In this document: one piece after another, positions 6,063-7,553 of the stretch
Layout: each line of letters opens with the position of its first letter
How positions within the stretch are numbered: the first letter of the stretch is position 1
IMG/VR virus record: IMGVR_UViG_3300041416_000287
Span: 1-64,000 of that record
Length of the DNA stretch: 64,000 bases
Direction: 5' to 3' (one strand)
Made by a program: the position numbers and the translations under genes
Notes under the pieces: generated by a model
The model's input: only the letters and a program-made list of their open reading frames with translations
Told to the model about the DNA's origin: nothing
The model's database searches: none

Positions 6063-6068
6063 TAAATG
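6063..6068 (+). promoter_or_regulatory. TAAATG start-site motif (example of about 19 occurrences)
   Basis: TAAATG overlaps the ATG of many genes on both strands; see findings. Confidence 0.55.
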
Positions 6069-7553
6069 GAAATCACGGAAGTCTCGACAGCAACATCAGA
6101 GAGTGAGAAATCGGTACTTCCGAGGAAACTAAAATCGATGATCCCCGGGAGACCTCAATCAATTCGAGAACTAGCCTGCAATTTGCGAGATGCGGTAGTT
6201 ACCGTTACCGGACAAGTTGTTCTCACTAATGAATCGAAAGTCCCCACGATGATTAATCAGAATGGGAATGGCTTCTTCATTAAGGGTCATTATATTATTT
6301 GCCCAGCGGCTTTAGTGTTAATTGGACCTATGCAACTCGCTGAACACGGACGCATTCCCGCTTATCCTAATACGCCGACTAAGCACAAATACCCAAACGC
6401 TTTAGTGCGAGTAAGTCGCATTCTAGTTGATGTGTCGAATGTAAATGGGTCAGATCAGGCTTATAGTTATGAGGCCGACATTGTGGGGATTGATGGGGCG
6501 GCTAACATTGCTATCCTTCGCGTCAAACCAGAGTGTCAATGGAATGCTAAGAATCCAGTAATTCGGGTTTGCCATCCCTTTCTTCAATGGGGTAAGAGTC
6601 GAAGTTCATGTTCCGGTGACACGGTGATGCTAATCGGAAATATTACTGCTCCCGCCGCATTTTCGACTATAGCTGATTTACTACCCGGGGCCGAGAATGC
6701 GGTTACCTTGGGCACGCTGGCTGATAATCGATATGTTTTCCCAGCTGGGCATGTTCCCGGAGAACTTCTTTTACTATCGAATATGTTGCCCTGGAATCAT
6801 CAACAGGGACTTCCGGTACTTACGACTAGTGGCACCGTAATCGGGATGGTTATAAAGGTAGTTTCACCATTTACGTATAATATTGCCGTCTCTGAGTTCT
6901 TTATGCGTCGCCCCATCAAGGCTCTCATTCGAACATACCAAGATAATAAAGTGCCAGACCGGTATGTCGATTTTGTCCGGATGGTTGATGATCCTATCGG
7001 ATCATACTACTCCTTTAATAAGGCTTGGTTGGGAATTGCCGGAACCCTAATGAGTCAGATGGATTATGATACTATTTTAGAGTTTGGTGTAAGGGGCCCC
7101 AATACCGTCGATCGCTTTCCGATCTTAGAGGACGGCTCCTTGATCACTGATGATACGTGTAAGGAAATCGTAGGCTATCGAGTTACGGCTGTGGCCCAAT
7201 CTAACCCTAAGAAATTTCAACGAGTACTCATCCCGGGAGCTATGGATGACAGAGTCGAGATTCCGAGTGGTCAACCGAGCCCGCTAGTCGATATTATTAG
7301 TCCTGGGGATATTATTACCCATATTAACGACTGTCCTCTCGGAGATAGGAAGGGACAGATTTCACCTTCGCTAGCAATGTGGCGGGTTCGTCCGGGTGAT
7401 GAAGTCACAATTCAATATAAGAACGAATTAGAGCGATTTCGCGAGTCTCACCAGGTTACTGTCGCTACTGGTTCCTACGAGCCGTTCCTCGATTTTCCCT
7501 TCTATTGTGAGTCGATTATTCCATTCAATGAGATGGTTCCAACTCTATTATAA
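6066..7553 (+). CDS. HtrA/DegP-like trypsin-fold plus PDZ protein, catalytic triad lost
   Basis: GNGFFIK, EADIVGID..NIAILRV, GDTVMLIGN, GTVIGM, AWLGI, PGDIITHIN and PGDEVTIQY are collinear with HtrA. The triad positions read L, N and Q. Confidence 0.8.
   Translation: MEITEVSTATSESEKSVLPRKLKSMIPGRPQSIRELACNLRDAVVTVTGQVVLTNESKVPTMINQNGNGFFIKGHYIICPAALVLIGPMQLAEHGRIPAYPNTPTKHKYPNALVRVSRILVDVSNVNGSDQAYSYEADIVGIDGAANIAILRVKPECQWNAKNPVIRVCHPFLQWGKSRSSCSGDTVMLIGNITAPAAFSTIADLLPGAENAVTLGTLADNRYVFPAGHVPGELLLLSNMLPWNHQQGLPVLTTSGTVIGMVIKVVSPFTYNIAVSEFFMRRPIKALIRTYQDNKVPDRYVDFVRMVDDPIGSYYSFNKAWLGIAGTLMSQMDYDTILEFGVRGPNTVDRFPILEDGSLITDDTCKEIVGYRVTAVAQSNPKKFQRVLIPGAMDDRVEIPSGQPSPLVDIISPGDIITHINDCPLGDRKGQISPSLAMWRVRPGDEVTIQYKNELERFRESHQVTVATGSYEPFLDFPFYCESIIPFNEMVPTLL

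Follow-up and report, generated by a model that had tools for sequence, protein, structure and literature searches.

A giant-virus HtrA-like protein that lacks the catalytic triad, encoded next to a collagen-like fibre gene

HtrA proteins are the standard example of proteases that also serve as chaperones, and the locus described here raises the question of what such a protein does when the protease half is gone. The locus lies in the first 64 kb (64,000 nucleotides, the window from here on) of IMG/VR record IMGVR_UViG_3300041416_000287, a linear record of 240,448 bp that is about 46% complete by CheckV and has the gene content of a giant virus, namely, Rpb1, XRN exonuclease, DEAD-box helicase, Ser/Thr kinase, collagen-like, lipase, and amidotransferase genes and a sugar-modifying block. 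The source is a giant virus, probably of the Pimascovirales branch around Hydrivirus, Orpheovirus, and Pithovirus. At 6066..7553 on the plus strand an uninterrupted open reading frame (ORF) runs from an ATG start to a TAA stop and encodes a protein of 495 amino acids (aa), here called P0001. A first-pass annotation, which had only the sequence to go by, read it as a long and intact ORF for an HtrA-like protein with the whole catalytic triad replaced, and the ORF is as long and intact as was said. Our answer is that P0001 belongs to a clade, clade B, of a giant-virus HtrA-like family and is a non-catalytic HtrA-fold pseudoprotease, tentatively tied to a fibre protein encoded next to it; taken as a whole, this statement is one that we hold with moderate confidence.

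P0001 is barely recognisable by sequence alone and therefore the HtrA architecture needed testing. Its Pfam matches to Trypsin_2 (PF13365; E 5e-3, 18.0 bits against a cut-off of 27.6) and to PDZ_2 (E 1e-3, residues 399-452) were both sub-threshold, a sequence search of the PDB with P0001 alone gave no matches, and an NCBIfam scan of P0001 gave only noise. When a profile of the family with its 102 members was used, it matched HTRA1, HTRA3, DegQ, DegP, and HtrA2 with E from 4e-11 to 1e-7. The AlphaFold2 model made from the 102-row alignment had a mean predicted local distance difference test (pLDDT) score of 90.9 and a predicted template modelling (pTM) score of 0.90, and the only low-scoring regions were residues 1-29 and two loops. 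A Foldseek search of the PDB recovered DegP, DegQ, plant Deg1, DegS, AlgW, MucD, and M. tuberculosis HtrA (E 1e-16 to 1e-13, probability 1.0), and an ESM Atlas look-up was concordant with the HtrA fold. The model aligns with the protease and PDZ1 domains of DegP and DegQ through residue 471, the structure-based identity to cellular HtrAs is 13-21%, and about 150 residues that the cellular HtrAs do not have are placed in insertions. The family profile, the model, and the Foldseek search thus concur with the earlier claim that the HtrA architecture of protease plus PDZ is kept, and with DegP and DegQ recovered at the probability given above the fold is trypsin-like, so the objection that it might not be one fails. 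When P0001 is set against the definition of the HtrA proteins (MEROPS S1C), it has the chymotrypsin-like two-barrel domain and at least one C-terminal PDZ domain and it lacks the His-Asp-Ser triad, the G-N-S-G-G-P motif, and a score above the Trypsin_2 gathering threshold. The gene and its predicted parts are as follows.

6066..7553, plus strand: HtrA-like pseudoprotease of clade B of the giant-virus HtrA-like family (495-aa ORF, P0001)
6066..6152, plus strand: N-terminal tail, residues 1-29, predicted to be disordered (pLDDT 43-65)
6153..6950, plus strand: chymotrypsin-fold (S1C-like) protease-like domain, about residues 30-295 (profile, model, and structural alignment)
6309..6311, plus strand: codon GCT for Ala82 at the catalytic His position (alignment to HtrAs)
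6504..6506, plus strand: codon AAC for Asn147 at the catalytic Asp position (alignment to HtrAs)
6798..6815, plus strand: L1 or oxyanion-hole loop H245-Q-Q-G-L-P250, which replaces G-N-S-G-G-P (alignment to HtrAs)
6963..7490, plus strand: PDZ-like domain spanning about residues 300-475 and interrupted by a long insertion at about 337-413 (Pfam PDZ_2 match and structural alignment)
7020..7037, plus strand: putative PDZ carboxylate-binding loop K319-A-W-L-G-I324 of the form x-hydrophobic-G-hydrophobic (conservation)

The protease-like domain terminates in a helix at residues 277-293 (SEFFMRRPIKALI). By eye we saw neither a signal peptide nor a transmembrane segment in the N-terminal tail, whose length across the relatives ranges from 0 to about 360 aa and which is of low complexity and rich in Ser, Asn, and Lys. 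The K319-A-W-L-G-I segment, in which K319 and G323 are retained in at least 90% of the family, is presumably the counterpart of the carboxylate-binding loop that opens the PDZ domains of DegP, DegS, and HtrA2.

The strings in which the first-pass annotation had seen the replaced triad, CPAALV, NIAIL, and HQQGL, are residues 79-84, 147-151, and 245-249, and they do align to the HtrA motifs as claimed. In the family-profile alignment IVTNAHVV of the HtrAs is opposite IicPaslv, which puts A82 at the catalytic His; DIALIKI is opposite niAvLkI, which puts N147 at the catalytic Asp; and GNSGGPLV is opposite sqsGlPvi, which puts Q247 (codon 6804-6806) at the nucleophile Ser. H245 and L249 stand where the HtrAs have Gly193 and Gly197, the glycines that give the oxyanion hole its shape, and the only conserved residues of this loop are Gly248 and Pro250. 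P0001 is therefore without the His, the Asp, the Ser, and the oxyanion-hole glycines.

Is this loss private to P0001? A word-based homologue search of 5.8 billion proteins gave 101 relatives (protein clusters), none of them above 60% identity and the best with an E of 1e-188, and a homologue set of about 100 clusters with such E values means that the HtrA-like ORF is not a product of chance. All the relatives came from metagenomes, some of them on contigs of 0.5-1.6 Mb, and the only named ones are HVR_LOCUS1234 and HVR_LOCUS477, both from the 'uncultured virus' genome OW988864.1 of 1,599,776 bp. We take this genome to be the circular permafrost Hydrivirus (Pimascovirales); the permafrost paper on Hydrivirus mentions neither proteases nor collagen (PMC9546926). 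A word-based profile search gave essentially the same set and no homologue from a cultured virus, and in it the weakest family member had an E of 1e-83 and the first ordinary cellular-type HtrA an E of 7e-6. Because of this gap in scores the family is a distinct viral radiation. A locus search of IMG/VR came up empty with P0001 alone, and when the family alignment was used it recovered three distant loci, all without a collagen neighbour. Among the structural matches in BFVD the best were two Solumvirus proteins (template modelling (TM) scores of 0.81 and 0.67), and more distant HtrA-fold matches came from Yasminevirus, Catovirus, Megavirus, Pandoravirus, and others. One further BFVD match, an LCMiAC02 protein named 'collagen triple helix repeat motif-containing protein', prompted us to consider a collagen/HtrA fusion, which was rejected: the N-terminal extensions of the family are low-complexity tails, and the only collagen-like stretch among them is four repeats in P0094.

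A maximum-likelihood tree of the 102 rows (quick IQ-TREE, LG+C20) divides the family into clade A with 30 rows and clade B with 72 rows, with a Shimodaira-Hasegawa-like approximate likelihood ratio test (SH-aLRT) support of 99%. Clade A keeps Asp at the Asp position and holds all nine members with an H-D-S triad, and it also has many partly decayed triads (HDA, SDA, QDV, HDT, and SNT), in some cases with near sisters that differ, P0073 having HDS and P0077 HDT. Even its H-D-S members read F-S-S-G-L-P around the Ser, the canonical G-x-S-G-x-P being found only in the most divergent row, P0101. In clade B the Asp site is Asn in 71 of the 72 members and the full triad is found in none of the 72, P0001 included. 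P0001 has its position inside this clade, in a 9-row group with 98% support where its nearest relative is P0002 at 63%, and it has the N147 and the Cys79 of the IICPA motif that go with the clade. What the first-pass annotation saw in one gene is thus the mark of an old clade of 72 protein clusters. From the sequences we infer that catalysis became dispensable early in this viral family and that clade B lost the triad fully long ago.

Two further observations on the family are recorded here. At locus L004 two family members lie in tandem (7548-9389 and 9459-11102, with S-D-T and G-N-Y at the triad positions); each begins with a poly-Ser tail of great length, no collagen neighbour is present, and the pair shows that local duplication occurs in the family. 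Six relatives, P0007, P0034, P0041, P0051, P0064, and P0095, carry the Joint Genome Institute (JGI) label 'S1-C subfamily serine protease'; only P0064 and P0095 keep H-D-S, and for the triad-less P0007, P0034, P0041, and P0051 the label is misleading.

The 1.6-Mb genome has one gene of each clade, the clade-A H-D-S member P0069 (HVR_LOCUS1234) and the clade-B member P0105 (HVR_LOCUS477), and hence the clades behave as old paralogues. This leads to the possibility that the clade-B protein is a regulatory partner of a catalytically competent clade-A paralogue, which it would bind or form hetero-oligomers with and thereby switch on or steer, as MamO does with MamE (PMC4794232). The occurrence of both genes in one genome, their look of old paralogues, and the MamO/MamE precedent would all fit with this. 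However, the triad of clade A has been lost repeatedly and its core reads F-S-S-G-L-P, which makes a reliably active partner doubtful, the clade-A and clade-B genes are unlinked on the genome, and the 240-kb record has no second family member and no PF13365 match in a six-frame search, which counts for little in a record that is about 46% complete. We consider a regulatory partner unlikely.

Whether the triad-less protein is still under constraint was examined in the five clade-B genes for which DNA was available. Amino acid identity among them was 51-59%, while the four-fold sites in conserved codons were only 28-37% identical, which is about random. The nonsynonymous divergence (dN) was 0.36-0.50 and the synonymous divergence (dS) was at least 1.2 or saturated; as the Nei-Gojobori dS was saturated for most pairs, the dN/dS of about 0.1-0.3 is a rough upper bound. 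The only near-identical pair, L008/L009, had zero differences. Clade B is under purifying selection. The first-pass annotation had asked whether viral orthologues share the substitutions under such selection, and the full triad is missing throughout the 72 clusters of the clade, with these amino acid identities and saturated synonymous sites. P0001 thus has two of the marks of a pseudoprotease, which are homology to active enzymes with the catalytic residues missing and a gene that purifying selection has kept from decay. The constraint does not fall on the former His and Ser sites. In clade B these two sites had entropy percentiles of 71 and 91, and the values in clade A were 62 and 92, and they are therefore among the more variable positions in both clades; that the triad positions are unconstrained in the sister clade as well goes beyond the first-pass annotation. 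Residues 241-247, the nucleophile loop, are the most variable stretch of the protease-like domain. C79, D143, and G248 do not vary at all in clade B, N147, P250, E233, and H170 hardly vary, and the Leu-Gly of the PDZ loop is among the least variable sites. The long motifs retained in clade B are GNGFFIKGHYIICPA, WGKSR, DNRYV, GELLLLSN, SEFFMRRP, and GDIITHIN.CPLGDRKGQISPSL.MWR.

This pattern bears on whether P0001 might be a cryptic hydrolase that uses non-canonical catalytic residues. The polar residues H75, D143, H170, S178, E233, and S276/E277 are conserved family-wide, and with the invariant C79 of clade B they are what could be put forward for it. These residues, however, are conserved in both clades and are common to the members that still bear the triad, so they are not replacements for it, and in the alignment to HtrA they fall where strands begin, in the linker between the domains, or at the buried position equivalent to Thr54, that is, away from the active site. 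The family conservation analysis found no conserved Ser, Cys, or His in or beside the nucleophile loop, the loop itself varies the most, and the Gly193 equivalent is missing. An alternative catalytic triad therefore appears unlikely, and a hydrolase of any cryptic kind is to our mind extremely improbable.

Since the gene is retained under purifying selection without the triad, a non-catalytic role is the sensible reading, and the gene product is very probably a non-catalytic HtrA-fold binder. It would act by binding and not by cutting. The PDZ domain with its conserved putative carboxylate-binding loop would bind polypeptides and the former substrate cleft could hold segments of a client, and the role could be that of a holdase, an assembly scaffold, or an anchor, probably oligomeric as HtrAs are; such a scaffold would be trimeric if HtrA-type trimerisation is retained. 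The overall reading of the first-pass annotation holds up to this point, as the HtrA fold, the loss of the triad, and the purifying selection all fit a non-catalytic role, but the decoy that it also offered finds no support. There the protein would be a dominant-negative inhibitor of a host HtrA (HtrA2/Omi or Nma111) that acts by forming mixed trimers or by soaking up substrates. The general logic of an inactive homologue is what speaks for a decoy, and no finding points to a host enzyme. Against it stand the 13-21% identity to cellular HtrAs and the insertions of about 150 residues; the gap in scores (E of 1e-83 or lower against 7e-6) indicates a long independent history of an old virus-specific radiation and not a recent host capture, and at least one related genome has a triad-bearing paralogue of its own. 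We regard a decoy as very improbable.

A third possibility is that P0001 is a packaged or structural virion protein in which the HtrA fold is a mere building block unrelated to any fibre. Strong conservation in spite of an unconstrained active site, the variable low-complexity N-terminal tails, and the wide occurrence of HtrA-fold proteins in giant viruses as seen in BFVD are all in keeping with this. The conserved PDZ binding loop, on the other hand, suggests ligand binding over pure packing, and we judge a purely structural protein to be quite unlikely. The text of the Naiavirus paper mentions neither protease nor PDZ nor collagen.

If P0001 is a binder, what does it bind? The genes around it give a tentative candidate, and the relevant features of the window are as follows.

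5129..5998, minus strand: class-3 lipase gene, the divergent neighbour and part of a conserved block (Pfam)
7593..7943, plus strand: 116-aa ORF with predicted membrane segments, between the pseudoprotease and collagen-like genes
7951..7972, no strand: perfect 22-nt palindrome (TAGATTCTTGG/CCAAGAATCTA) just upstream of the collagen-like gene
8015..9346, plus strand: collagen-like fibre protein of 443 aa, the conserved downstream neighbour
9420..10010, minus strand: class-I glutamine amidotransferase (GATase) gene on the far side of the pair, conserved (Pfam)

The recurrent gene order is an AAA ATPase (minus), an unknown protein of about 800 aa (minus), the class-3 lipase (minus), the HtrA-like gene (plus), the collagen-like gene (plus), and the GATase (minus). 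The unknown protein is at 1939-4359 (minus) in the window, has no Pfam match, and ends in an acidic Ser-rich tail, and the lipase is absent in some relatives. This block is present in the window (1-10010) and in L005, L006, L008, L009, L011, and L012, with synonymous sites saturated between them. The collagen-like gene is directly 3' of the HtrA-like gene and on the same strand in 8 of the 9 clade-B contexts, these being the window, L005, L006/L007, L008/L009 (the 1.6-Mb genome), L011, L013, L017, and the contig of P0009, which is counted as probable (its downstream gene codes for 405 aa). L017 is a metagenome contig that was recovered independently through the collagen gene's own motif. The spacer between the two genes is 43-121 bp in the relatives. 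No collagen neighbour was found beside any of the three clade-A genes examined (L002, L004, and L010).

The collagen-like protein has an invariant Cys-rich N-terminal motif, GPCHTY...W.C.C...KA.FTVCDG, which occurs once in the 240-kb record, followed by G-x-T repeats, and its C-terminal domain is about 160 residues long. The model of this last domain (pLDDT 74) is a jelly roll that is closest to BxpB/ExsFA and BclA and then to members of the TNF/C1q group, and all of these fold matches are trimers. What 8015-9346 encodes would seem to be a giant-virus surface fibre of the BclA type. Two long ORFs over the collagen repeats, at 8305-9042 (minus) and 8421-8807 (plus), are by-products of the G-x-y repeat and not genes. 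In L011 the public gene call took wrong-frame fragments of 125 aa and 120 aa, and the intact collagen-like ORF there is 316 aa (L011:6367-7317). The product of the 116-aa ORF at 7593-7943 begins with an acidic stretch rich in Ser and has two or three hydrophobic segments, and this ORF is found in this genome only. Between the stop codon of the HtrA-like gene and this ORF there is no palindrome and the two may share a 3' end. Palindromes similar to that at 7951..7972 occur in the spacers of relatives, which suggests that the HtrA-like and collagen-like genes are on separate transcripts.

The tentative client of the pseudoprotease would be this BclA-like, presumably trimeric collagen fibre encoded directly downstream. 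P0001 might bring three chains together so that their C-terminal domains nucleate the triple helix, which would help the chains to register or fold, or it might attach the fibre to the particle. Several points weigh against such a link. The collagen neighbour is missing beside the clade-B gene P0025 (L012); the adjacency may be inherited gene order, as the AAA ATPase, the lipase, and the GATase are syntenic too; giant-virus genes are transcribed individually, with palindromes in the spacers, and adjacency may not imply a shared function; and the C-terminal tails of the fibres are only loosely alike (..TISQVFF, ..TINQIS, ..MIQQIDY, and ..KYPR). A complex prediction for P0001 30-495 with fibre residues 283-443 scored 0.01 against a mark of 0.32 and counts neither way. 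A functional link between the pseudoprotease and the fibre is thus possible and we put it forward only tentatively. More doubtful is its strongest form, a dedicated two-gene module in which a presumably trimeric dead protease, by means of its PDZ domains and its former substrate cleft, registers, folds, or anchors a trimeric collagen fibre on the particle. If it were true, this would be a virus-encoded collagen assembly factor on a protease scaffold, a type that has so far not been described, and the repeated decay of the triad in clade A would point to an early recruitment of the entire viral family for binding.

Further along the window there is a cluster of sugar genes at 30372-52386.

30372-32279: FkbM-type methyltransferase
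32354-33586: GT1-family glycosyltransferase
37403-38386: NAD-dependent sugar dehydratase/epimerase
39232-40833: DUF6492
50986-52386: GT2 glycosyltransferase

Glycan decoration occurs on BclA and on mimivirus fibrils, and by analogy the products of this cluster might decorate the collagen-like fibre. Within the same part of the window, the Rpb1 ORF at 45177-48629 (minus, 1150 aa) has only the first 64 positions of Rpb1 domain 5 and continues from there with an Rpb6-like segment (PF01192, residues 1083-1128), and the remainder of domain 5 was found nowhere in the 240-kb record. Either the largest RNA polymerase subunit is split or rearranged or its second part is in the missing half of the genome.

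Inactive HtrA homologues were already known in MamO and in the S1C-like domain of RsgI9, and HtrA-fold proteins are common in giant viruses by their BFVD matches. What is new is a virus-specific clade of PDZ-bearing HtrA pseudoproteases with a conserved collagen-fibre neighbour, and in the literature we found no paper that describes this viral family or the loss of its triad. A whole viral lineage that has long been without the protease half is a natural experiment on scaffold-only function. About 100 giant-virus clusters that so far go as 'hypothetical' or under the mistaken label 'S1-C subfamily serine protease' can thereby be named and assigned a role open to testing, and annotation pipelines are warned that most members of this family called 'serine protease' are called so in error. 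The tentative link to a BclA-like collagen gene offers a way into the question of how surface fibres are made by giant viruses.

When P0001 is compared with known systems, the closest architecture is that of HtrA, DegP, DegQ, and DegS of family S1C (E. coli DegP 3otp and 8f0a, DegQ 3stj, M. tuberculosis HtrA 7w4s, and Deg1 3qo6), which have the same chymotrypsin fold followed by PDZ and recognisable motifs around all three active-site segments. P0001 differs from them in that His, Asp, Ser, and GNSGG are absent and about 150 residues are in insertions, in being below the Pfam Trypsin_2 and PDZ_2 thresholds, and in having no evident signal peptide; it is a viral protein, the presumed site of which is the cytoplasm or the viral factory. 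HVR_LOCUS477 (CAH6419276.1, OW988864.1) is an orthologue with 51% identity, with S-N-Q where P0001 has A-N-Q and with the same collagen-like and GATase neighbours, but it has an N-terminal tail of 238 aa. Solumvirus A0A3G5AJU6 is the best BFVD match to P0001 (TM 0.81, 29% identity), and neither protein has an annotation beyond hypothetical or uncharacterised. Among the family-profile matches, with an E of 2e-4, was the S1C-like domain of RsgI9 (PDB 7sjy), which we take to be a triad-less domain that is used for sensing or binding; it differs in being part of a bacterial membrane anti-sigma factor, of which it forms the extracytoplasmic sensor, and is not a close relative.

For the neighbouring fibre the comparison is with BclA and BxpB (ExsFA) of the Bacillus exosporium, with which it shares the layout of a short N-terminal domain, collagen-like repeats, and a TNF/C1q-like jelly roll. 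By fold it is matched best by BxpB 8d02, ExsFA 7r1m, and BclA 1wck, with 11-19% sequence identity, and it differs from BclA in the Cys-rich N-terminal motif, which BclA does not have. We know of no HtrA-like partner of BclA. For the pseudoprotease itself the nearest parallel in kind is MamO, an HtrA-family pseudoprotease of magnetotactic bacteria with non-catalytic roles (PMC4794232). MamO differs in that it sits in a bacterial membrane, carries a TauE domain, and lacks a PDZ comparable to that of P0001; it also binds metal by a di-histidine motif and activates MamE. What the two proteins have in common is homology to HtrA, a degenerate triad, and a residue other than glycine at position 193, and MamO arose by duplication beside an active paralogue and was kept for non-catalytic work (PMC4794232).

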